A stretch of DNA of 59,241 nt, the filler included, from Bipalium vagum (lineage: Eukaryota): the NCBI GenBank assembly GCA_037834085.1. It is 3 parts of 3 records of this genome, joined end to end, with 100 filler letters (N's around TTAATTAATTAA, not from the genome) between each part and the next. Parts side by side here need not be neighbours in the genome. Positions count along the whole stretch, not along the records: positions 1 to 17,323 come from JBBMKC010071266.1; 2 more parts are not named here. One strand, written 5' to 3'. The notes beneath the pieces are model-generated. The model was not told the origin of the DNA, did not search any database, and saw only the letters and a program-made list of their open reading frames with translations. Made by a program: the position numbers and the translations under genes. Below are positions 99-16,954 of this stretch, piece after piece. Each line of letters begins with the position of its first letter. The first letter of the stretch is position 1.

Positions 99-492
99 GA
101 ATTGACATAAGAATATGTAGTAAAAAGAATATATTTATTATCGTGTATTAAAAATAGTGTTTTTACTTTTTTTTCTCATATTTAACCATTAAGCTTAAAC
201 TGAATTATTTATTAACTTTATTTTTTTAGCAGCTTTTTAAAATTTAAAGTAATAATAATTTTAAATATATATTTATAATATTAAAGATTTATGATATTTA
301 TTGTTTTGCAGATTTTAATGTAACATCCTATAAATAAAAAATGGGAATTTTTTAAAACTTAATTAACTTTAATATAATATACAAATTTTTAAAATGAATC
401 ATTTTAACTTATTAACCAAGTCAAGAATCTTTAAAATAATACATAGAAGTAAGATAAACATATTAGTATTCTTAAATTATTTACATTTTCAG

Positions 493-514
493 AAATGACT
501 ATCAAGATCGTATT
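493..514 (+). CDS. Candidate 5' coding exon of the pLGIC gene
   Basis: Acceptor ttttcag at 486-492. Either ATG495-MTIKI then donor GTATTG at 510 (phase 0), or NDYQDRI then donor GTAAAT at 515 (phase 0). Both join exon 2459 in frame. Confidence 0.4.
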
Positions 515-3500
515 GTAAATTTTTACAATAAAAACATACATTTAGGGAAAAACTTAGATCTATTAAATCTGACAGTTATGGATTAATGCTATTAATTCTG
601 CCAATCATATTATGCAACCAATAAAATCTGATAATCATATGACAAAAAATTATTTGATTAAATGATTCTTTGTTAAACCAATCTAGGAATATAAGATCAT
701 CTAAGAAAGCTTCCCTTTTATCTTTATCAGGGTGTTATTTTCTCTTTCCTAATGTTTTAGACTTTATTATTGTCTTTAATTATCTTATTTTAGGAAAATT
801 ACTGTGCAGTTAAGAAAATATAATAAACTCATTTTCAAGAAAAATATAAAATTTTATTTAACTATCGAATTTTTAAAGAGATATAATAGTAGAACTTCTG
901 AAGGTGGAATAAGTTTTAGCTAAATTACCAGTCGTTTAGGAAGAAATCTTTTCACTATTTTACGCAAGTGGAATGAGTAATGTAGCATCGTCAAACTGGT
1001 AGTGAACAAAATAGAAGTACCAACAACAGTTAAAATACCTTCATCTCCTAGCTGTTGGAGACAGATTTATGCCAACTACTAAAATTGACATAAATTTAAA
1101 AACGAACCTCAGGGAAAAGGTAGAAGATTGCGTAGTATTTGTGTGTGTTAATACTGTCCAGATTGATTGTTACTATTGACATTATATCATGAAGCCGCAA
1201 ACGTACCTGATATCAAGAAAGACAACGTTAAAGTCAAGAATGGAATTGCATCATCTTTTGTAATGAATCAAGATACTGTTTATGGCAAGGTAATGGATAC
1301 TTGAAGCCAACAACAAAAAGCTACAATTAGTTACACCTTGTTTATGAGATGGACTTCTATATCCTTTGGAATCCGATCACTCCTAGTATTTATCTAGTAT
1401 TTATTCAGTATTTATTGACTGCTCTTCGTTACATAGTTGATATTTTGAGATCCGTACTTCTTTCATTAATGAAAACAATTCCAGTCAGTATTTTTCAACA
1501 GTACAATAAACACTTCATATTGCCAGTATATCAGCGAAGTTTTAGCAAGAATCAGAAGTTGACTATATCTTGACCATTATATTTACCAGATATTTATCCT
1601 ACTGAACATATGTGGAATATCAGCAGTTGTCAATCACGTTGTTCTTTTGTAATGAATTAAACAATCACCTTCAATAAATATGGAACGACATGATTGATAA
1701 AGAAATAAATCTTTTAATTAATAATATGGGTTTTTAAAGTACTAAGATGATAATTACTTCGTTCAGAACAAGAAAATCATTAGACAAAATGACCATTAGA
1801 TCTGAAACATGATTCGGATGTTTAGGAGGTTTTTAGAGTTTTAGTATCATGTAATGGTGTTGGTTGTCATATCTAGTGAGGGTAGTATAGTTTTTTAATA
1901 AATGAAGGTACTGGAGTTATGAATGTAATGCATATATTATCAACTACTAAAAATTTATCATCATACAGAAGATGGTTGTGATAGTGATCGATAAGGATAG
2001 GTAGTCGATGGGAGAAAGTATGTATTTCAACAAGATTTATAAGACAAGGAACTCTCAAGCATGGTTTTATGAACTTAACCTATCATTGGTCACCTAATTT
2101 GTGACCTAGCAACCCTGAGTGAAATACGATCTATTGTTATTTATGATATATAGTTGTGGCAAAGGTCGAAGCAAAAAACATTCAGTACTATCAAGTCACT
2201 ACAGAATGCTCTCAAAAAGTGATAGTATTTTCGAATCGGAAAGAGGTAAAATGATCGGTTTCGGTCGAGGAGAAAAGCGGTTTCGACAGCTAATGGAGAT
2301 GATATCGAAAACTCTTATTTTGTAGACTTTCATATTGCTGTATCTAAATAAGCTTACTAACTCGTTTTATTTGTTTTATAAAAATTCCCGGTTTATCTCA
2401 AACATCCTGTATAACAATGAAATTTAAAATCTTTTAATTTTAATTATTATTAATTCAGACTCGGGTCTCCCTAAGATGTGTTTTTCTCAAAATATATAAC
2501 ATTGATACTGTAAATGAGCAATACTTTGCTGAAATATTTCTTCAAGCTAAATGGAGAGAACCTTTGCTGGACAACGAAGCAAATATAAAAGTACTTTTTG
2601 TGTCAATAAAATTAAAAATCAGTTAAATATTTATTTAAAATTTCTAAGAGTTCTTTGTTAAATAAAGTAAAATTTTCTTATTTGAAAAATATGGTTGGAT
2701 GATCATCTATTTATTCATAAAAATCAAATAAAGTTAAATGAAATTAAGAAATATTTTTTAAAAATTAAAAAACACTTCAATATTTCAAAATTAAATATAT
2801 TGGGTTGTTACACATGAAATCACCGATTTTTATCTTAATTTACAAAAAGCCATGATTTTGTCAAAAACTTATATATTTAGTACAAAATATTGTAATTAAC
2901 ACAACATTGCCAACGTGTGACAAGGTTATTTATTCAAAAAATGTAAAAATTTCCATTTCAGAATCTATGAAACATCGAAAAACCTTTTCGACCATAGGTT
3001 GATCAGCGAAGTTCTTTTGACAAGTAAATAATTCAATAATAATTATTGTAAAAATTAATTTACTTTACAAAGTATGTTTAAAAAGTTTTCTCAGTGACAG
3101 TAAATAGACTACTTCTTACATTTAGAACAATTTTATAATCACTAAAATATATAAAATTTGCCGATCCCAAAAATATATAGTTTTCATATATCTCTGTAAT
3201 TTGTCATTCAAAATTTAGCTGTTGTTTTAGATTTGAATTTATTTCTGCCAGATTTTAAAATATAATTTCTATGGACTTCTATTATTGCGTTCGATTTTGT
3301 TTCTTATTTAGAAAAACTTCTCGGGAAACACATCAAATGTTAACCAAAGCTTATAAAGATGATGTAATGACGGAAAGAAATAGATACAGATGTTGTGCAT
3401 TGTTTAAAGAAGAATTAATGACAAAGAACGGTTTTGACGCCCAAATGAGGTGATTACCGAAGAAAAGGTTCTTCAGGTGTGCTTGAAGACCGTCGTAAAG

Positions 3501-6500
3501 ATGTCAGAATGCTAGAAAACGAGATTGGAACGTAAAAGCAATGTGCACACAATATTGACTGAAAAAATTGGAAAAAAAACTTGCAGCACGTATTGTTCCC
3601 AAATTCCTCTCTGATGATGAACAGAAAAAACCTAGACAAAAATGTGAGGAATTTCTGGAAGCCTTCGAACAAGATTCATCTTATATTGAAAAATTGTCAC
3701 TGGTTTGTTTCGAGCCAGAAACCAAAAGATAAAACATGGAATATCGAGGGAAATTTTCACCAGAAAAAAAATTGCACACATGTCAAAGTTGAAAATCAAG
3801 TTCACGCTCATCACCTGTTTTGATATTAGAGTTAATTCACTAAATATTTGTTCCTAAAGGCCAAACTGTCGATCAATATGTTTACGCCGATGTTCTTACA
3901 TTATTTGAAAAATTACGAAAGAAAATACCAGATTTGTGATAATCAATAAGATCCCATATTCTACACGATAATCCAAGACATCCTGTGTCACTATTGATCA
4001 ACGATTTCTTGTCAAAGCGGCCAGTTACAGTTACCAAATTCTTATTAGATCTATCTACGCAATTTCTCTCTTTAAGAAAGTTGAAATGTGCCATGAAAGG
4101 GACTGTTCATGAGTTTAAGGAAGAAACAATTCAAAATCTAATATCCGTCACACCTGATGAATAGGAATGTTTTCTATCCCTAGTGAAAAGACAGATTCAA
4201 TGTATTAGTTGTAATGCTGATTATTTTGAAGATGACAAAGAATATTAATGTTTTAATAATCTGTTGTTAGTTTTTTTATTTAAGATAACTGACAAGACTT
4301 TTTGGACATTCCTTTCTGTTTATAAGGAATATAGTTTTCTGACTTTAATAAATGCAAGTTCTGACAAAATAGGAATTATTAAAACACAGATTTACAGAAA
4401 ATAGTGAAATAAGAAATATTAAGAAATAAAACTATATTTTAATGAAATTTCTCATTCAAACATTAAAAATTAAGCTATTGGTTTAAAAGATTTTGAAATG
4501 TAAAAATCCAGGTAAATAGAATTCAATCTTAAAAAAATATTTTCACAAATTGCTCAAAATGGCTTCTGGCATATGAAATAGATTAGAAATATAAGGCAAA
4601 TTTAATTAATGGCTTTTATATTTAATTGAGGAAATTTTTTAGAAAAAGTAATAGCTACTCTTTGATGGTCTCTCATTTTGATAGGTTGCATGAAGTCGAT
4701 TCATACATAGCCACATTTAAAATCATAGTAAATCATTGAACAAAAATTTTCTCATAATTTTCATATTTTATTTATATCTCAAATGTTAAATTCATTAAAA
4801 AACTAATTAATTTATATTTATTCATTATAATTCGAATCAAATTTTATAATAGTATCTTTAAAACGACCCAGATATCTCTTAAGCATTTGATTTGACAAGT
4901 TTCCCATATAATCCACGTATGATTGCTCAGTAATTTTAAATTAATACATAATATATATGATTTATGATATTTATATGATCTCTGATAATACTGTATTAGT
5001 GAACTATTTTAAATTGGTATAATTTCTAAACAAGATTTTCTTTTATTTTCAGTTTTTAATTGGTTGTAGTTGTAAATTTTAAATAAAAAATATATTTAGT
5101 AACCGTATATTTTATAACACAATTTCAGAGTAAAGATCTTCTAAAGTTTTGGAATCCAAAACTAAATGTTGAAAATCTGTTCAAGGAACAAAAAGATCTT
5201 GTTTCTTTTGAAGTTACCTATCCTGAAAATAACGGTGTTGCTTATTTAGTTCAAAAAAGGAGAATGAAAGCCATATTTCATGAGACATTAGAACTGATGC
5301 AATTTCCATTTGATTGTCAGGTATATAAAATAATTAATGGTCTACTACTAGTTTATTTCAGTTGCTTTTAATAGTAAATTTAAGTCTACCTTTTGTCTTT
5401 TTTTTTAACAAGTTTATTATGGATTAAGACAAAAACAATTGACATATCACAAACCGGTAGAATGCTTTCAACTGATATATCTGAAATAAGACTACTTTTA
5501 TCAATTTCTTTCATTAATCAGTTAGTAGAAATATAATAATAATGATTCGTTTAATTATATGGAAGTTGTCAAACACAAATTGTTGTCAAGACAACTGTCC
5601 CCAGGTTCTATTAATAATTATATTAATATTTCGTTCCGAAGTTTTCTATTAGGATCTATTTCGTTTGATTACCATTTTTTGTTTTTTTAGAATGGTAATT
5701 TTCTGTGATTTCGAAATATTTTTTTATATAAGGCTTTTCAATGATAGAATTATTTCTTATTAGATTTTCAAATGAACCTAAATTTAAAGGCGATAAAAAT
5801 CCTTCATCAATTTTGGAGTCACTCAGAAAATCTGATAATATTATAACTAAATAATTTTTAAAATACACGGTGTGTCATATAAGTAACCGAACTTTTGATT
5901 TAAATCATATACAGTCCCCATCAAAAGTCTGACCCCACCTTTAAAAAAATGTAAATTCCTATTGTACATTTGAAAAGACGCATTAATTCCAAAAAATGTA
6001 TATATTATGTACAACATGAATGAACATTGTAAAAAAAATTAATATTTTGTTATCTGTGACTGCCGCAATATGATTAGGCATTGACTCAATTAAATGTTTG
6101 CAATAGTCAGGCGAGATATCATTTCTTCACACTTGATTAATTTTAATTTTTAGGTTATTAATATATGTTGGATTGAGACTTGAGACTTTTTTCTTCAATT
6201 CGGACCAGCAGTTTTCAATTGGTCGGGATAATTTCCAGGCCATAGACAAAGTACCTCCATATTGTTAAGAGAGATAAATTCTTTTACGGCCTTGGCTGTA
6301 TGACAAGTGACCTCATCATGCTGAAAGATTTTACCAGTTTCAATTGGCAGAATGTGTTGGTTTAATATGTCGATGTACTCCGTAGATCTACTATTTGTAC
6401 CAGCAGGAACAAAACAAATTACCTACATCATCATATGACATTGATGACCAGACCATAACGAAAGGAGAATGTTTTACATTCTTGACAGTATATTTTGGAT

Positions 6501-9500
6501 CAAACCTTTTGCCGTCAGGTCTCCAGACGCGTATAACATTGGGAGAGAATAGCTGGATTTTATATTCGTCTGAAAAAATAACTCTGTGCCAATCTGTGGG
6601 CTCCCACTTCTTATATTTGTTACAAAAGAAAAGGCGGTTTTTAACATTCTTTAAAGAAAGTCTAGGCTTTATTACAGGCCTTCTGGAGTGCAACGAGAAT
6701 TCGTGTCTAAGCCGCCGAGAAATAGTACTCATGCTTACTGGTGCATCTGGAGGAAGTTGTGATCTAATTTCACTTATTGGTGCAAAAACTCAAGTACAGG
6801 ACAACTGATGAATCAATCTATCAGTTTGAACTGTTGTTACTTTTGGCCTTCCACATTGTTGTTTGTATTTGAATGATTTATCCAAGTCATATCGTTGAAT
6901 TGAACGTCGAACAATTCCCCTTGACACATTCATTCTCGTCGCAATTTGTCTCTGCGAATAATCTTCGTCGCGCAAAATCAAAATTTGAGCTCTTTTTCAG
7001 CATATAATTCAGCCATTATTTAAACAAAAGTATTTATTTGACAAGAATAATATTATATAATTATGCAAAATTAATGAAAAAACAATAAATTGATATAGGT
7101 CAGAGTTATATAAATACCTATATCTAAATTGATATCATACCAATGGATAAATAATGAAATCAATTCAATTTTTGAAGGTGGGCTCAGACTTTTGACGGGT
7201 TTCATTTGTTTAAACCAATTTTTAATTGAAAATTACATCATTCACCTTTGAAAATCATCAAAATTTATTTATTTTCGGATAACAGGTTTGAATTCTATTT
7301 GCATTTAAGTAAAGATATATATCATCCTTTTGTCATAGATTTACAATGGATCAAAGAGCGAATATTAAATTTTTTTTTAAATCGGGAAAAAAATTACGGA
7401 GACATGAATTGCTTCTAAAGGTTTTAGTGATGATTGATGTCTCGAGCACAGATTTATACATTGTTTACACGATTTTAAAATGGCCATGATGATTTAAATG
7501 ACGATGAAAAGCCCGGACGTTCAAATGCTGAAGGACGTCCAAAATTGGTGGGAAAAGTACGTTAAATCATTGCTTCTGGTGGTAAAAAGACTATGAGAAT
7601 GTTAGCAGAAGAATTAAATACAAGTGTCTTTACCATTTGGATAATTTAAAAGAAAGACTTTGGATAAAGAAAGGTTTGTGCTAAGTTTGTTACTCATGCA
7701 ATAAATGAAGACCAATAAACAACTCATATTAAATATTGCATAGATCTCCTCAACGCTGTTGAAAACAAGTCAGATTATATTGATTCAATTATAACTGGTG
7801 ATGAGAGGTGGGGTTGGACAAATCAGGCGTAAAAGTGGTAAATGGAAGTCATTGAGTGAGCCAAAACCTAAAAATTGCATTTTTCAAAAATTAAGATAAT
7901 GTTTATTACTTTTTATGATTCAAAAGATAGTCCATAATGAATTTGTTCCAAAAAATCAAACTGTTAAACTGTTAATGGGGAATAGTATTTAAATGCTTTA
8001 CATCGTTTTTGTATGGTAAGGCTAGGTCTACTGCAACTAAGAGGGTGAAGTAAAATAATGAGTGATAACACTAAATTTTATTAAACGGCAATAAATATTT
8101 TAAAACTCAATTTTAATCAATTCGTAACAATAAACAATTTTTAGTTCCACAAGAAATTTTATGAATTTTTCTGATTAACACTCTACGAACTCTTATCAAT
8201 TCATGGCAAATTGTTGAGACAGGTGCCTCTGATATCAGGATACTTCTTTACTTCATCAAGAGCTCTTATTTTCCCATTTAATATATAAAAGTGAATTTAA
8301 TATTTCTCAACATTAGGGAAATAATACCCTCAAACAGAAGAAAATATAACTTTTTTAAAAAAATACATTTTAATATTATTATATTAACATTATTCTAAAA
8401 AAATATTCTATTATTAATACAACTGTATTATTTCATTAGATAACATTAGAATTTAATTATTTATTTTAAACTAATAAAATAAATAAAAAATTAAAATAAA
8501 AGCATTAAATAATTAAGCTTTTCAAATTGAAATATCAAATGTATATAAATATTTTATCCAACAAATTCAAAATGATATAAAATATTATTTTCAAATGTTG
8601 TAGGTGTCCATCTTTTAATTTTTACGGCTTATGGTTTTCAAACCACAACAATTTTTCAATTTTTTTATTATGATTACCCAAAAATATTTATAAATATATG
8701 TATTTTCGTAAAGGCTAATCAAATCAATCAAACGAGATTTGTATTGAAATTGATATTAAATAAATGAGATATTCAAGAAAATATGTAATATTGAGAGTTC
8801 ATAAATTAGTTGTCATTGACAATGTAACGTGAAAATCGAGAAACCTTTAATAATATATTACACCAATTTTTAAAAATTTATTAATACAAATGATTCAAAC
8901 TAAAATTTAGTAGCATAACCATTTGAAGCGATAACAGCTGCACATCTACAAGGCATAGAGTCAACAAGTTTAATCAATTTTTTAAAGGAATTTTAATCCA
9001 ACTTTCCTGTAAATTTCTAAAAGAAATCTTGTTTTTTGGATATCTTTTTAACTCGGATGGTACGATCAAGCTCTTACCATAAATGCTCAATTGGATTAAG
9101 GTCTGGACTCTGACTAGGCCACTTCATAACAGGGATTTTGTTACGTTCTAGCATTTGTTTAATAACGTTGGATGTATGTTTGGGGTTGTTATCCTGCTGA
9201 AATATCCAGTCTTCTTTCATGGTTTCATATGCAAATGGAATCATTGTATTCTTAATTATGGTATCATATATTTGCATGTTCATGATGCCGTTTATTTGAA
9301 TAAGAGCTCCGACTTCATCTCTGGTAAACCAACCCCACACCATGACATTTACTTCACCGTGTTTAATAGTCGGAACCTGATATCTTACGTTAAATCTTTG
9401 GTTAAAAGATCGACGAACATATAGAATACCATCACTAGATAGCAAATTAAATTTGCTTTCGTCATTTCGGACCATCTTAGACCCATCTTGAATTGTTCCT

Positions 9501-12500
9501 TCTTTATGAAGGCGAGCAAATTCCAATCGGGCCATTTGATTTTCCTTCGATATAAAAGCTTTCTTTCTGGTACCCCTTGCAAATAGTCCAGCAGATTGTA
9601 GACGTCTTTTTACAATAGAAACACTGGTTTTATTTGATTCTTTGGAATGACTTTGATTAATTTCTGTGCCAATATCGACAGCAGTTTTTAGTGGATCTGC
9701 TTTTGAAGAATGAATAATGATGCGATCTTGATGAGCAGTTGTTTTCCTTGGTCTTCCAGATATTGGTGATTATCTGTCACTTAAGCCCAAAATCGCACGA
9801 AACACTTGCTTGTGTTCTTCCTCTTTTAACTGCCATAACAACTCGTTTCTTAATATCATTACTATTTTTTGCTCTCACCATGATTGAAACTAAATAGTTT
9901 TAGACATTATTTTAAGAAAATAGTTTATAATCTTACTATAAATTGATTATAATTGATTATAAATAAAATGACAACTAATTTTTGAGCACTTGTTTTTAAT
10001 GGTTTATGGTTTTTTATTATTTAAAATTTTATAAATTTTAAATATTTTTTAGAGTTTATTTCTTTGCATATGTAGGAAGATTTTTAACAACAAAAATTTA
10101 ACATAATTATCTAGTAACAGTTACATTTACTTATGAAAACTTAAAATTCGTGTGTCAACTAACTTTTGAGCGCTAGTGTATATAATACATAATTTATAAG
10201 TGTACAATATATAAAACAAAATTTCTAAAGCTAAAAAACGCATCAAAATAATGAATATTAAAAAAATTTTTTTTGAAGAAATCTATACTTTTTATAATTA
10301 ATTAGGATTTATCAATTACAGTCTCTACTGAATTATCATCTGAAGAAGTAATTCTTTCGGAAAACGAAGAAGACATTAGTAAAATTAATTCTGGAAATGT
10401 TATGGATTCTCAAGAATGGATCATGTACAATCATGTGGAGGTAAACTTTTATGTTACTTTATCAAGGCAGTTGGTAAAAATATTCATGTTTGAAAATTTT
10501 ACTTATATTTATTATAAATTTTTGTAATAGTTATTGTATTGATTAAGGTGGAATTGAAAGATCTTGTTAATGACTGCAATATCGGGCCAAAGTCGAGAAA
10601 AGCCATCACTTTTACATGTCGAGCAAGTCGTCGATTTGGATATTTTATAGTCAATTATTTCATGATTAGCTCCATGTTCTTTATATTAACCTTTTGTAGT
10701 TTTGCAGTGTCTGAAAATGTATTTGGTCGATTGCAGTTGAGTATGTACACTTTATTGACAAGTGTTACTTTCAAAGTAGCTGTAACCAATACTCTTCCGA
10801 AGGTTCCTTACTTAACATATTTGGTACGAAATGATTTTTTATCATTAATATTATTATTATTTAATATTATCATAATACATTTGTGGAGACTCCCAATATT
10901 TCTCTATAAAGTGCATATAAAGTAAGATACAAAGAATGTAGGATACCAAACTATATCCTTGGATGCAAATGATTGACAATATGTTTTTTCAATATCATTG
11001 AGATCTTTGAATTTCCTTCATTTCAAGAAGTGGACATTGATCAAATTAGCTTGAAATCTGATAGCACTAGTTCTGAACTATATACTGGATACATATGGTT
11101 TCAATGTCGGGACTAAAACATTATCTTACTAAAGAATGACTCTTTTTCCATTGATTAATTCTTGATACAGTTGATGCTTAACAACGTACATTCTATCGAT
11201 TTGTTTATAATATATACTACGGCAATAATAGCCTACGAAATTACCTTGAAATAAATTAATCTTCCATAGTTCAACTAAACGAATAACATTACCTTTTTAA
11301 TGAAGTTGCATCTTTTTGGGATTTTTATTTCTGAATTCATTGATTTGTCATATCTAGATTCTGGTAGAAACTCGACTTTTTGCCACATAATTATTTTTAG
11401 GAAAAGAATATCATGAGAATCTTGCAATAGTTGACTGCAATTATCTAATCGTCTATATTTTATTGTCAAAATTTCATAGCTACATTTTATGTTTAAAGTA
11501 TATATGATTTTATTTAAGTAGTAATTTATTTGTTTAAATATTGAAATATTGACTAAGTTTTTGAATTTCAATAAATTAATTTTGTGATTAAGATGACTTT
11601 ACATAATTTGAGATAAGTCCACCTCTGACCGAATGCCAAATATGCAATTTTGCCCACTCCTTACGGCTTTGACGTTACTTAAAATATAGTAAATGTTTTC
11701 TTAACGCAACATATCGTTTTAAAGAAAAACTGCCTAAACTTTTTTGTGCCCAAAGTTTACTAATTGTTCTTGCAGTTTGCTCATAAAATTACCGTAGATA
11801 CTCGAATATAAGTCGAGGTAAAAATATGTCTGGGTAGTTTCGTCTTTCGTACATTTATAAAATAACAAGGAAAAAATGTCAATCTTTTGATACTTTATTG
11901 CAAAGTATTCGTAATAATATTTATATATTTTTATTTACAAACATGGCATGATAGGTAACATTTATTCAAAACCACAAAATTCGGAATCCGAGTATGATTG
12001 AAGAAGTTACAATGCCTGCTCATTAGTCATATGGTCTGAATAGAAGTCGTCATCACCCGATTCGTCATAATCTTCGGCAGCGGTGGTGTAATCTATCCAG
12101 AGTATGTCGTCTTCAGTTCCATCCATCTTGTTTGATATCCCGGTCTAAAACTGTTATGACTCTTATATAAGTCGACCCCATTTTTTTCATTAAATTTTAT
12201 AGAAAAAAACCTCGACTTATATTCGAGTATCTACGTTAATGAGAAATGGAGCTTAAACTGGAAACTCGGCTCCAGAGCGATAACCTCTTAATGCATTGTT
12301 TATCTCTTGGACAGAATTGACTAACTCTTAGTTTACCTTCAACGGTTCCTTGGTAATTCAAGTTCTTAACCAACTTTTGATAACCTCGTTTTGATACATC
12401 GAGATTAAATGTTTTCTTCATTATCTTAATAACTTCACGCCAGGTTTTACTAGCACAACGAAGTGCTACAAATGGTATTCTACTTTCAATCGAGCTAAAT

Positions 12501-15500
12501 TTAACCGGTAGTTCTAAAAAAAACTAAAATTAATTTAAAATTTAAATAAAACCATCAATATGAAATCTATATTAATTCATTTAAACAGTTCTAATTTTAA
12601 GGATATATAATTATATAAAATTAATTAAAGGTGAACAGACTTAAATAACGTTCGGTATACATTTCAACACTGTATGTTCTTTGTTTAAGTTCTTGAGAAT
12701 TTTTGGCATTACAATTCTTACTTTAAACACTTTGTTTAAATACTACCAAAAATATTCAATTGACCTTAGCTATTTCAGTACCTTTTTTGTGTAGTGAGAT
12801 ATTTTTCCTAGATCACATTAAGTTTTTAAAATAAGAAATTCTGGATAATAATAATAATAATAATAATAATATATATAATAATAATAATATATAATTATAA
12901 TAATAATAATATGTAATAATAATAATATATAATAATAATAATATATAATAATAATAATATATAATAATAATATATAATAATAATATATAAATATAATGTT
13001 TAAATGTAGAGCAATCAAATGATGTTTTAAATTTTCCATGTAGAATATGATAAAACAGGTATTCATTAATTTAAGGAATTAGATAAATAATCTTTTATAT
13101 TATTTCTTTATATTAATCTTTAGAAATTAAGTATATTTTAAAGAATTATAAAAATGATCGTCAAGGTAATTAATTTTTCATTAATTTTTTATGATTATAA
13201 TAAAATAAATTATTAAAAATATAAAAATTATTATACTTAAAATAATAATTTTTCATTATTTTTTATTAAATTAATTAAAATTATAAATTTGCTTATTATA
13301 TTAAGTAAATTTTAAAAATTGCAAATTTTTCATTTTTCTGGGGTGTTCGTTGCATATATAATTTTAAATTTGTTAAATGAAAAAACTGTGTTTTTGTATT
13401 TTATATTGGTTTATGCAGAAATACAGGGTCTTTCAAAAGAAGCTTTTCTACTTTAAGTCACTATTTCTCCGCACATAAAAATTAAAAAGCCAAGTAATTT
13501 TATTAATACCTTTATTTAAATACAGATATTACAAAAATTTATATTTTAAATATGATTTCATTAAAATGACCACCTCTGGCCTTACAAGTTTGGGCTATTT
13601 TATGGAATTTTGCATAACTTTTTGACATAAGTAAATTGAGAGCATAGCGATTTGTTCCGAAATTTTGTCTTTGAGTTGTGTAATAGTTTTTGGTTAATTA
13701 ATATAAAATTTATCTTTTAGATATCCCCATAAGAACTAGTCTGGAGCCATCAAATCGGGAGATCTGGGAGGCCAATCAACATCACCGAAACGTGAGATCA
13801 CACCAGATGGAAAAGTTTCGTGTAATAATGCAATTGTTTTCCTATTTGTATGGGATGTGGCACCATCTTGCTGAAAGTAAATATTCTCCACATTAAAATC
13901 ATTCAGATAAGGCTTAAGGAATGTTTCTATCATGTGTCGATATTTCTCTCCCGTTACTGTAACCTGCAGCCTTTTCGAAAGAGTATGGATTAATTACACA
14001 TCTTGCCCATATTCCACGCCATACAGTAACTTTCGACTAAAGCAACCCTATGTTTCTTCATTCAAAACATAGGGTTGCTTTGTTGCCCAAATTCGACAGT
14101 TTTGTTTATTAAAACACCTTCACTCAAATGAAAATGACTTTCATCAGTCATAATGATTTTTTTCCAAAAATGAGGATCCGCAATTGATCTTTCTAACAGC
14201 CAATTACAATAATTCAGGCGACTTTGATGGTTTGATTCTTTAAGCTTCTGAACTACGGTAAGCTTATAGGCTTTTATATACAAATCTTCAAACATTATCT
14301 GCGACAAACGAGGTTATGAGAGGTTTAATTCCTGTGCTCTATGACTGATTGAGATGCATTTATTGTCTTCAAATGCTTCCTCGTGTACGTGCAATATTTT
14401 CAGGTTTCCGCGCAGATTTTGATCTATCTGCTACCGAGCCAAATGCTTGAAAAGCATTAACCAGACTGTAAATTGTTGGTTTTGATTGACATTTGTTTAT
14501 CCAAAATTTTGCATTTTATTTTTTAATGGTTACTGAAATTGAACTACCGCTTTGATAAAATATTTTGACAATTTTTGTCCGTTATTGCATATTATAACGA
14601 CCCATATTTAATTTTCAAATGTTTAGTTTGAATAATGTTAAATATTAATTTATTTAAACCAAAACTACTTAGTATTTAATATGTTAAAAGTAGTAACGCT
14701 TCCTTTGGAAGAACGTGTATATAGAAAAATATATAAAATTCCATTCCAAATTATATATAATCCCATAAAATTTATTGACTAACATAATAATCAAAGTAAA
14801 AATTATGTATTATTTTAAAATTACACATTTCATTAATTTTGAATCCAATTTTAATTATGAATAATGTTTAATATGTTTTGTAACATTAAATTCTACATTT
14901 TAATGGTAAAGTCAATAATACATTTGATTTCTAAAAGTTATGGTTTTCTAAAATAAATTAAAAATAAGCTATACCCTAATTATTTGAAAATGCATTTAAA
15001 TATAATAAAACTTTAGAACCTTTAAAAGAAAAAGAGAATTATATAAAAATTTTAAGTAATTTCAATGCATAACCATAATTCCGAAAGATTGTGACGTTAT
15101 GTTTATAAGATGAAATTAAATGGAAATGGAAAATTAACTTTTAATATATTACAAACAGGAAATGCTTTATATTTTTCGGAAGCTTGAATTTTTTCAGTTT
15201 ACTATGAGCTTTAAAGAAACCAGAATTATGACTTTTATTTAGAAATTTACAGATGTATGAAATTTATATATTATTATTTATTTAATAGTTCCTTTAACAT
15301 TTAATGTCGCACCAAAAATTTTACTTGTTTCATAACTTTTATCCGTTTATAAATATTACTATTAATAATAATGTTATATAACGTTTAGGATCAAGCAATG
15401 ATTTCTAATATACTCATGATCATGTTTATCTGTTTTTGGCATTCTTCAATATCAACTCTTTATTTGAACTCAATGCAGACTCCAAATATTACTACTCAAC

Positions 15501-16954
15501 AGATATGGAAAATTGAAATAGTTCTTATTCCATCATTCTTGACGTTTTACAGCATTGGAATTTTGGTTTTTGTCTTGGTTATTTATTTCGATGTAAGCTC
15601 GTTTATTAATATCACTTCAAAAATAATATCCTAAAATTTTATTTTTATAAAATGTACTTTTAATTTACATCGTTTCACTTCTTTTTTGACATTGTAAAGT
15701 TCAAAAAATACATTCTTTTGGACAGTCATTTCTTTTCATGAATATTATGCATGAATATTATTTTATTATTATTTTTATTTTAGTGTATAACTAAATTCTG
15801 AAATTGTTTTATTGATATTCGACTGAAAAATTTTACTAAAAATTCTTTTTCACATTTTGTTTCATTTTTATTTAATGAAATTGAACAATCTTCATCAATG
15901 CTTTTTAAAAGTAAATTTTCCTGTTCTCATGTTAATTTTTTCATTACAGCTGTCTCTTCTTTTTTTCAAAAGTTCTTTCTTTCAGATACTTCTTGATTAT
16001 TTGAAGTACCCTGGTCTTCTTGATATTAATTATCTTTGAAATCTTTGATATGGTTAGAGTCAATAATTTTTTTTTCTTTATTCATTACTTGTTTCTCTAT
16101 TCTTTGAAGCCACTGGGTTAGCTAATTACCTTAATTTTTAAATAACTGAAGTATTTTTAAAGTATAAATAAACAAATTACCTACTTTAAATAAATTTCAA
16201 ATAAATCTTTACAATGTGAAAATAGAGATTATTTACATCGGTTTTTAATCAGTTGAAAATTAAAATAATTTAACAATTTTAGAAATATTTTAAAAATCAG
16301 TAAATATAAGTATTTTATTATGAATTGCAATATGCGGAATCTCAAAAAGCGTAATTGGTGCACTGCGGAATCAAACAGCTCAGATTCGAAGATGAGGGAC
16401 TTATGTGATAAAATCAATTGATAATAAAGAAATCACTTTTATACGCAATAAAAAAAATTCTTTTCTTGATATTATTATAACGTGAGATGAGAAATGGATA
16501 TTGCTTGAAAATCAATTACAATCTTTTCAGTGATTGTGTCGTGTTAAATGTTCTCAAAAATTTCCGAAATAATTATCACAACCGTAAAAGATTATGGTGA
16601 CCGTTTAGTGGTCTATCACCAGTCTCGTTCATCAAAATTTAATAAATTAGGGTGAGACCATTACTGTCAACAGATAAATTTAAAAATAGATGTAGTTTCG
16701 AAGATTTTTAGTTCATTGAAAAGATCTTAAATCAGTAAATAAATCTCAAAATTAGCTAAGAATAAAATTGTTCTGATATTAAACGTGTTGTGTTACCAAA
16801 ATCATTTTAGAAAAGTTACAATTATCTATTTTTAAACACTTTAATATATTTATTAGAATACTTTTAGGCTGGTAGTCGAAGAAGAAAGATGCAATCTAAA
16901 GATTTAAACTTTCAAAGTAGACTAAATGGACATTTCAATGGTACTGTAAGTTAA
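495..16954 (+). CDS. Cys-less pentameric ligand-gated ion channel subunit (Neur_chan_LBD + 4 TM), spliced gene, about 346 aa; 5' end uncertain
   Basis: GT-AG exons 2459-2590, 5129-5320, 10306-10440, 10548-10823, 15389-15592 and 16868-16954 join in frame (all phase 0; 341 aa + stop). Motifs: IDT..E..F.AEIFLQAKWREP, WNPKLNVEN (loop A), LELMQFPFDCQDL (Pro-loop), QEW, pre-M1 RR, M2 RLQLSMYTLLTSVTFK, LPKVPYLTYLD. Candidate first exon at 493-509 or 493-514. Confidence 0.9.
850..2411 (+). mobile_element. Decayed Tc1/mariner fragments (probably two elements)
   Basis: Eroded PD..PTEHMW motif at about 1575-1620, a second WxPNxxDL-like motif at about 2087, and TIR-like aaacatcctgTA at about 2400-2411. 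Confidence 0.45.
2459..2590 (+). CDS. pLGIC exon (beta1-beta2)
   Basis: ttcag|...|gtactt; TRVSLRCVFLKIYNIDTVNEQYFAEIFLQAKWREPLLDNEANIK. Confidence 0.9.
2801..3030 (-). mobile_element. mariner 3' fragment
   Basis: TIR-like tgggttgttacacatgaaatcaccg; minus strand reads LVTRWQCCV (mariner C-terminus). Confidence 0.55.
3271..4248 (+). mobile_element. Decayed mariner transposase
   Basis: N-terminal YCVRFCF..KTSRETHQMLTKAY HTH, LHDN and C-terminal DYFED; many frameshifts and stops. Confidence 0.75.
5129..5320 (+). CDS. pLGIC exon (loop A to Pro-loop)
   Basis: ttcag|...|gtatat; SKDLLKFWNPKLNVENLF...KRRMKAIFHETLELMQFPFDCQ. Confidence 0.92.
5866..8010 (+). mobile_element. Decayed mariner element interrupted by a Tc1 insertion
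   Basis: TA-CACGGTGTGTC TIR at 5866; transposase remnant from ATG 7346 (MDQRANIKF, CAKFVTH, IITGDE); 3' truncated. Confidence 0.7.
5912..7203 (-). mobile_element. Tc1 (DD34E-type) element, non-functional
   Basis: Imperfect TIRs CAGTCCCCATCAAAAGTCTGACCCCACCTT / AAGGTGGGCTCAGACTTTTGACGGG; ORF pieces with GRPKVTT, VIFSDE, VMVW and PIENCW. Confidence 0.9.
8795..10178 (-). mobile_element. Tc1 DD34E element with IR/DR-type ends, non-functional
   Basis: ORF 9074-9535 with DESKFNL and FQQDNNPKH-34aa-E (WPSQSPDLNPIEHLW); terminus TA-CACTAGCGCTCAAAAGTTAGTTGACAC at 10178; inner repeat copies at 9969-9989 and 8795-8815. Confidence 0.9.
10306..10440 (+). CDS. pLGIC exon (loops B/F)
   Basis: ttag|...|gtaaac; DLSITVSTELSSEEVIL...MDSQEWIMYNHVE. 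Confidence 0.9.
10548..10823 (+). CDS. pLGIC exon (loop C, M1, M2, M2-M3 loop)
   Basis: Lies within ORF 10539-10925; taag|...|gtacga; ITFTCRASRRFGYFIVNYF...RLQLSMYTLLTSVTFKVAVTNTLPKVPYLTYL. Confidence 0.92.
10930..12520 (-). mobile_element. Heavily decayed Tc1-like remnant hosting a pogo insertion
   Basis: Minus strand reads EWAKLHIWH..W.Y (Tc1 pre-catalytic segment) at about 11610-11660; transposase-like sequence on both sides of the insert. Confidence 0.4.
11792..12236 (-). mobile_element. Non-autonomous pogo-family deletion derivative (445 bp)
   Basis: 28-bp TIR CCGTAGATACTCGAATATAAGTCGAGGT (only the terminal base mismatched), TA on both sides; internal GISNKMDGTEDDILW acidic transposase tail. 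Confidence 0.9.
12846..12997. repeat. Degenerate (AAT)n microsatellite with AT interruptions
   Basis: Read directly from the sequence. Confidence 0.9.
13424..14717 (-). mobile_element. DD41D (rosa-type) Tc1/mariner element, non-functional
   Basis: Imperfect TA-flanked TIRs; IMTDESHFHL; FQQDGA...WPPRSPDLMAPD with 41 residues between the Asp residues. Confidence 0.88.
15389..15592 (+). CDS. pLGIC exon (M3, short loop, M4)
   Basis: tttag|...|gtaagc; DQAMISNILMIMFICFWH...IEIVLIPSFLTFYSIGILVFVLVIYFD; two hydrophobic helices. Confidence 0.9.
16868..16954 (+). CDS. pLGIC terminal exon
   Basis: ttttag|AGSRRRKMQSKDLNFQSRLNGHFNGTVS*; AATAAA at about 17075. Confidence 0.75.
   Translation, partial: AGSRRRKMQSKDLNFQSRLNGHFNGTVS

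Follow-up and report, generated by a model that had tools for sequence, protein, structure and literature searches.

Pentameric ion channels gated by ligands (pLGICs) of the Cys-less 'Pro-loop' clade were described bioinformatically by Jaiteh, Taly and Henin in 2016 in protists and invertebrates, mostly Lophotrochozoa, with the cysteines of the Cys-loop replaced by a polar and then a hydrophobic residue (PMC4795631). In 2023, Johnson et al. reported eight Cys-less schistosome members, in a clade that includes Smp_336620, Smp_334630 and Smp_135040, as well as planarian homologues with expression in mechanosensory neurons and seizure-like phenotypes upon RNA interference (RNAi) (PMC9874803). In later papers the clade appears only in the role of outgroup or as an entry in a catalogue. 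Here we analyse a window of 59,241 nucleotides from the genome of Bipalium vagum (assembly GCA_037834085.1, 440.8 Mb in 272,664 contigs) and describe a gene at positions 2459–16954 (+) of its first part, contig JBBMKC010071266.1 (GC content about 27%). We assign a probability of roughly 0.8, covering identity and general mechanism, to the reading that this interval is the conserved core, from strand beta1 through the tail after transmembrane segment M4, of a protein-coding Cys-less pLGIC gene.

The gene shares with the Pro-loop clade the polar and hydrophobic replacements of the first and fifteenth loop residues, the retained FPxD motif, the lack of a conserved second cysteine pair, the short loop between M3 and M4 and the spiralian range, and differs in belonging to an additional lineage-specific expansion, which comprises about 19 loci. 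The segment preceding M2 reads S-E-N-V-F-G-R, which is neither PAR nor GEK; Gly stands at -1' and Phe at -2', and an acidic residue comes no nearer than Glu at -5', whereas Glu is reported at -2' in the schistosome Cys-less members. An acidic residue at -1'/-2' of M2 is reported for the schistosome clade and does not define the Cys-less class as a whole (PMC9874803).

The best sequence and fold matches of the family are GABA-A beta3 and GlyR alpha, with which the 0' Arg and 9' Leu of M2 and the LPK(V/I)(S/P)Y motif between M2 and M3 are shared. In contrast to these receptors, the Cys-less family has no C-x13-C loop, signal peptide, PAR motif or long basic M3–M4 domain, forms a separate clade and carries a long helical tail after M4. 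GLIC and ELIC, both bacterial, are exported with a signal peptide and end shortly after M4. They too have a Cys-less loop with the polar-then-hydrophobic pattern, a short M3–M4 loop and no N-terminal helix, whereas the window gene is eukaryotic, contains introns and encodes a polybasic C-terminal tail. The 'secondary' Cys-less subunits of nematodes, Dirofilaria immitis Q70GM3 and Caenorhabditis elegans lgc-34, likewise lack the first Cys-loop pair; they lie inside the anionic Cys-loop clade, keep the cysteine pair of loop C and have a shifted YPFE motif (PMC4795631, PMC9874803), unlike the window gene, which has neither the anionic-clade placement nor the loop-C pair nor the shifted motif.

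Gene model and family assignment

An earlier note on this DNA had claimed that six phase-0 exons rebuild a stop-free channel, and all six exons were confirmed where that note put them: six open segments on the + strand, each bordered by an AG acceptor and a GT donor and in phase 0 at both ends, join into 341 codons without a stop or frameshift. All ten splice sites internal to the model follow the GT-AG rule. The third exon lies in frame 0 and the fourth in frame 2, so that the 107-nt intron between them is required. The exons and their landmarks are as follows:

2457–2458 and 2591, +: AG acceptor and GT donor bordering exon 1
2459–2590, +: exon 1, 44 codons; beta1–beta2 of the ligand-binding domain, family motifs IDT..E and WREP.LD
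5129–5320, +: exon 2, 64 codons; WNP.L motif, beta strands and Pro-loop positions 1–13 (5282–5320)
10306–10440, +: exon 3, 45 codons; loop positions 14–15 (D-L, 10306–10311), beta7–beta8 and the conserved SQEW motif
10548–10823, +: exon 4, 92 codons; beta9–beta10 hairpin, Arg cluster before M1, M1 (10641–10709), M2 (10728–10790, with 0' Arg and 9' Leu) and the M2–M3 loop LPKVPYLTYL
15389–15592, +: exon 5, 68 codons; M3 (15389–15463), M3–M4 loop and M4 (15518–15589)
16868–16951, +: exon 6, 28 codons; polybasic tail after M4 (AGSRRRK...), followed by TAA at 16952–16954

The M3–M4 loop, put at about 20 residues in the earlier note, measures about 18 (15464–15517), is acidic/polar and includes an N-I-T sequon at 15485–15493. 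The tail encoded by exon 6 matches the motif AGSRRR.M..KD of the Cys-less family.

The loop that gives the class its name reads E (5282–5284)-TLELMQFPFDCQ up to position 5320 and continues with D-L across the junction of exons 2 and 3. As had been claimed, position 1 is Glu, position 15 is Leu and a lone Cys stands at position 12; the C-x13-C disulfide loop of canonical Cys-loop receptors is absent. The invariant Pro of the F/YPxD motif is present in FPFD (5303–5314), and both P116 and D118 are invariant in the family alignment. Glu occupies loop position 1 in all 13 distinct translated paralogous copies of exon 2, the three paralogous copies of exon 3 aligned from the first residue begin with Asp-Leu (3/3), and the paralogues as well as L033, a 1,064-nt Logan transcript contig (SRR21676451) of a close relative, open exon 3 with DLS. 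The window loop is an exact match to the signature E-x-[LM]-E-L-x-x-[FY]-P-x-D-x-Q-[DE]-L, which was found in roughly 90 database relatives. The Glu...Leu loop also occurs in about 19 paralogous loci of the same genome and in homologues from flatworms, annelids, molluscs, nemerteans and rotifers, including Macrostomum, Fasciola, Fasciolopsis, Owenia, Littorina, Gigantopelta, Tubulanus, Rotaria and Pinctada; a feature-based search further adds Xenacoelomorpha and diatoms. The Cys-less loop is a family trait and not an artefact of splicing or modelling.

A conserved second cysteine pair, that of loop C, is absent, as expected for the Cys-less clade. Exon 4 does encode two cysteines (10575–10577 and 10617–10619) that are coincidentally spaced as C-x13-C (DC-NIGPKSRKAITFT-C). 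The paralogue L006 and most members of the wider family lack the first of them, and the two occupy non-facing positions of the beta9–beta10 hairpin in the structural model of the closest relative (see below). They probably do not form a replacement disulfide, the spacing not being conserved.

Exon 4, searched against 1.84 billion representative proteins, returned 261 relatives, the best of which, P0001 (358 aa), is 68% identical. The six exons tile residues 15–345 of P0001 colinearly, without gap or overlap at the junctions, with 190 of 328 residues identical (58%). Exons 1 to 6 correspond to residues 15–57 (30/43 identical), 58/60–120 (36/61 identical over 60–120), 121–165, 166–258, 259–326 and 327–345, respectively. 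Exon 4 also matched M1–M2 of GABA-A beta3 from PDB (phmmer, E = 4e-8) with 0' Arg and 9' Leu in register, and exon 2 had no match in PDB. Such agreement goes far beyond chance. Open paralogues of each exon occur in the same genome (E = 1e-9 to 1e-40), with about 19 open copies of exon 1, about 19 of exon 2 and five of exon 5, as well as six close paralogues of exon 4 at 62–79% identity. In the L033 transcript, exons 2 to 6 are joined at the same junction positions, and over the exon-4 region its product shares 94% identity with the paralogue on contig C118433.

Full-length analyses (Pfam, fold and structure search) were carried out on P0001 as a proxy for the joined protein of the window, the exons of which were searched one by one. 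P0001 matches PF02931 with 35.2 bits (cut-off 26), as do five further relatives above the cut-off. Its AlphaFold2 model, built from a 55-sequence family alignment, has a predicted local distance difference test score of 91.3 and a predicted template modelling (TM) score of 0.86. In a Foldseek search this model matched GABA-A beta3 and GlyR at E = 1e-21 with TM scores of 0.67–0.72 over about 322 columns. At the sequence level the P0001 matches in PDB are GABA-A beta3 (1e-16), GlyR (4e-13) and GLIC (2e-12), which puts the family at about the same distance from the anionic Cys-loop branch as from GLIC. Judged from this model, the pLGIC fold can be regarded as established for P0001, a close proxy. 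The term 'prokaryote-like' used in the earlier note suits the loop and the short M3–M4 loop and does not extend to the nearest structures, which are GABA-A beta3 and GlyR, slightly ahead of GLIC.

In the maximum-likelihood tree, which placed exon 4 alone and left out nicotinic-type and bacterial rows, exon 4 is sister to P0001 (support 99) within a flatworm group with Fasciola and Macrostomum. It lies inside a 27-row clade composed only of signature-bearing Cys-less proteins (support 99), and the 13 canonical Cys-loop rows, ten of them from the same genome, fall across a branch with support 100. The nesting inside a canonical GABA, GluCl or nicotinic receptor clade that the earlier note had proposed as a refutation was not seen, and its assignment to an orphan class of Cys-less metazoan pLGICs is borne out by the signature match and by this placement. 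On sequence grounds the gene is assigned to the eukaryotic/spiralian Cys-less Pro-loop clade, outside the canonical Cys-loop receptors. It is one of about 19 paralogous loci in a lineage-specific expansion of a known orphan family. The description of such channels as functionally uncharacterised holds for the ligand, the ion selectivity and the electrophysiology, but not for the planarian homologues, which have a mechanosensory-neuron expression pattern and RNAi phenotypes (PMC9874803).

Membrane orientation of the family

At slightly better than even odds, we predict that the eukaryotic Cys-less family, including the window gene, consists of 'inside-out' pLGICs with a cytoplasmic ligand-binding domain. 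As controls we took ten Cys-loop genes without introns from this genome. A signal-peptide-like stretch within the first 40 residues was found in none of the 62 Cys-less members and in nine of the ten controls. The N-terminal extensions of the Cys-less members are hydrophilic and 8–917 aa long; in three family transcripts, in-frame stops lie upstream of the Met, which makes these N-termini complete. More distant Cys-less eukaryotic matches have acidic N-termini, again without a signal. Fused domains were sought as markers of orientation, and the Pfam search of ten long family members returned the two channel domains only.

The distribution of charges differs from the controls as well. On the side of the ligand-binding domain (before M1, between M2 and M3, and the first 15 residues after M4) the mean number of Lys and Arg residues is 9.1 in Cys-less members vs 5.3 in controls, whereas on the opposite side (M1–M2 and M3–M4) it is 1.9 vs 7.3; the domain side is the richer one in all 49 Cys-less members scored. 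The M3–M4 loop has a median length of 12 aa and is acidic or Ser/Thr-rich in the Cys-less members, against 75–115 aa in the controls, and the tail after M4 has a median of 47 aa with a motif such as AGSRRR.M..KD, against 0–10 aa. N-glycosylation sequons are rarer in the beta-sandwich domain of the Cys-less members (0.34 per 100 residues) than in that of the controls (1.05), and within the Cys-less members they are denser in the M3–M4 loop (1.54 per 100 residues) than in the domain (Fisher p = 1e-5 and 1e-4, values that are overstated since the rows are related). The window exons follow the family, with five Lys/Arg residues before M1, five after M4, one in each of the opposite loops and the N-I-T sequon between M3 and M4; instead of a long basic M3–M4 domain and a short C-terminus, they encode a tail of at least 28 aa beginning with RRRK. 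In the P0001 model the tail prolongs the M4 helix to residue 357.

A large N-terminal domain is hard to translocate without a signal peptide, and the missing signal peptide, the charge bias and the positive-inside rule together predict an N-in/C-in topology in which the ligand-binding domain is cytoplasmic. Two points count on the other side: the topology argument is statistical and comes from related, non-independent sequences, and basic residues before M1 and between M2 and M3 occur in canonical receptors, the controls included. No statement of a cytoplasm-facing ligand-binding domain in Cys-less pLGICs was found in the searchable literature, which is not proof that none exists, and no discussion of the missing signal peptide, the polybasic tail or the reversed charge bias was found in PMC4795631 and PMC9874803, as far as these are searchable.

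The same family may instead have the classical orientation, with an extracellular beta-sandwich, gating by an external transmitter or chemical, and an N-terminal domain translocated without a cleavable signal peptide. We regard this as a serious contender, though at rather less than even odds. All characterised pLGICs have the classical orientation, and the fold and the coupling motifs of the family are canonical. Moreover, the planarian homologues act in sensory neurons (PMC9874803). Such an orientation is hard to reconcile with hydrophilic N-termini of up to 917 aa that lack a signal peptide throughout and are complete in three transcripts, with the conserved polybasic stretch after M4 and the uniform reversal of the charge bias, or with a domain that is depleted of sequons and devoid of the disulfide while the M3–M4 loop is enriched in sequons.

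By homology, five subunits would assemble around a pore lined by M2, with the 0' Arg and 9' Leu retained, and the FPFD loop and the M2–M3 loop LPKVPYLTYL would couple the pore to an occupied site in the beta-sandwich domain. Under the inside-out prediction, each subunit would insert N-in/C-in: the cytoplasm would be the side of the nominally 'extracellular' domain and of the polybasic tail, and the short M3–M4 loop would point outward or into a lumen. A cytoplasmic ligand-binding domain would make the disulfide dispensable, its loss being a consequence of the reducing compartment, and the ligand or ion that gates the channel would be intracellular, whether the channel sits in the plasma membrane or in an organelle.

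Ends, integrity and origin of the gene

Several observations weigh against the reading of the interval as a protein-coding Cys-less pLGIC gene. The full-length analyses concern the proxy and not the joined protein itself, and Pfam searches of the single window exons gave nothing above the cut-off, including no match to PF02931. For PF02932, exon 4 scored 13.2 bits and P0001 24.6 bits, and even full-length relatives remain below the cut-off of 28.1. RNA support was sought, and the only sequencing run containing the exons (X1) is genomic; over 5050–10950 its contigs span the introns, and no exon–exon joints were found. Both ends of the gene belong to the same list. A start codon or Met-bearing first exon was not found when positions 1–2458 were scanned for ATG...GT phase-0 mini-exons. 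Two candidates, at 1069–1119 (17 aa, donor AAG/GTAGAA) and 2143–2184 (14 aa, donor TCA/GTACTA), are backed neither by the upstream regions of paralogues nor by a search for the P0001 N-terminus in the 10 kb upstream of its likely orthologue. At the 3' end, the reading frame may stop at the TAA at 16952 or splice at ACT/GTAAGT (16945/16946) to a further exon, as the stop codon overlaps a consensus donor (ACT/GTAAGT TAA, 16943–16954).

With respect to the 5' end, every paralogue examined carries a conserved intron two to three codons ahead of beta1, which indicates that the model lacks at least one short 5' initiator exon, and P0001 carries 14–15 residues upstream of this conserved intron position. 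The L033 transcript begins with 90 nt of unspliced intron sequence upstream of exon 2 (L033:1–90), being either an incompletely processed RNA or the end of an assembly, and is uninformative on the first exon because of this start within the intron. Tails after M4 range from 9 to 149 aa in the Cys-less family, and the C-terminal tail of the window gene may continue in an exon past the 369 bases that remain on the contig. An exon similar to exon 6 was sought in the short flanks of the paralogous exon 5 copies and none was found. The gene is apparently intact: the earlier claim of intactness holds from beta1 to the tail after M4 and falls short at the initiator exon.

The gene could be a recently inactivated or never-expressed paralogue, within the large lineage-specific expansion, whose frames have not yet decayed. 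We consider such a pseudogene unlikely. It would account for the missing initiator exon, for the lack of an RNA run containing the exons among those searched, and for the many paralogues and introns swollen by transposon debris. It fits poorly with 341 open codons at a GC content of about 27%, where base composition alone would give a stop about every 12 codons, with the uniformly GT-AG internal splice sites and with the retention of all family-invariant residues. The proportion of nonsynonymous differences (pN) is far below that of synonymous differences (pS) against every paralogue, with pN of 0.16–0.35 and pS of 0.56–0.94, at which synonymous sites are saturated; this indicates that the lineage is under purifying selection. 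From its sequence the gene is probably functional.

The introns that contain transposon debris are the following:

2591–5128: intron 1, with a decayed Mos1-type mariner fragment at about 3259–4161, + (HTH_48 match, E = 2e-6)
5321–10305: intron 2 (5 kb), with decayed Tc1-like transposase pieces at 6391–6981 and 9074–9535, - (HTH_Tnp_Tc3_2 and DDE_3 matches)
10824–15388: intron 4, with mariner-like remnants of an open reading frame at 13736–14307, -

The remnants in intron 4 gave no Pfam match at E <= 0.01. Genomic contig depth is 400–4000 over 5838–7800 and 8596–10170, against 20–45 on unique sequence, showing that the Tc1-like pieces of intron 2 are high-copy in the genome. Intron 4 also includes an AT-rich low-complexity tract (12818–13066, GC about 17%) that reads as a poly-Tyr/Ile open frame on the - strand; it is intronic simple sequence and not a gene.

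We reject the possibility that this is a canonical Cys-loop receptor deprived of its cysteines by a wrong exon model or alternative splicing: the placement of loop position 15 two codons past a junction was a reason to check, and no evidence for it was found; position 1 falls within exon 2 at a distance of 13 codons from the donor, so that alternative splicing cannot restore a Cys there; the paralogues, the L033 transcript, which uses the same junctions, and the homologues examined all read E...(D/E)L; and the canonical Cys-loop genes of the genome form the separate clade described above. Equally rejected is bacterial contamination or recent horizontal transfer of a GLIC/ELIC-type gene, which the GLIC/ELIC-like Cys-less loop and short M3–M4 loop and the RefSeq label of relatives ('proton-gated ion channel-like') might suggest, but which is contradicted by five spliceosomal introns, three of them with eukaryotic Tc1/mariner remnants, by intron positions common to about 19 paralogues, by unique-sequence depth equal to that of the host genome and by nearest relatives that are animal proteins.

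Related architectures and meaning for the family

The anionic-type Cys-loop genes of the same genome have a different organization. Ten of them (L043–L052, on contigs C148956, C245452, C109930, C97517, C156910, C66038, C186740, C210192, C195463 and C242292) are single intronless open reading frames of 419–482 aa, several of which are closely similar. The loop C-x-M-x-L-x-x-[FY]-P-[ML]-D-x-Q-x-C is kept in 10/10, and PAR is present in all nine aligned. This set looks like an expansion of possibly retroposed copies, unlike the intron-rich Cys-less family.

Among the distant matches to the Cys-less family, P0065 (2697 aa; Prorocentrum cordatum / Polarella glacialis) and P0055 (2451 aa; one open reading frame on a 7.7-kb JGI contig) hold five Pro-loop motifs about 350 residues apart in one polypeptide, in which Pfam confirms ligand-binding and transmembrane domains. 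Other relatives bear fewer repeats, namely three in P0016 (1160 aa) and two in P0007 from Pinctada. This arrangement suggests natural single-chain 'pentamers' of Cys-less subunits in dinoflagellate-like organisms, with fusion by the gene caller being possible for the models derived from genomes.

The Bipalium vagum gene adds a member to a family catalogued in 2016 and 2023, and the new part is the predicted orientation at the level of the family. The Cys-less family already serves as an outgroup in pLGIC trees, and its absence from vertebrates is the reason why it is proposed as an anthelmintic target. The lack of a signal peptide, the polybasic helix after M4 and the reversed charge bias are features of the family that standard annotation ignores. 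If the ligand-binding domain is indeed cytoplasmic, this would explain how the Cys-less branch dispenses with the disulfide and why screens with external ligands may fail to de-orphanise these channels, and a superfamily viewed as one of cell-surface receptors would gain a class with intracellular gating.

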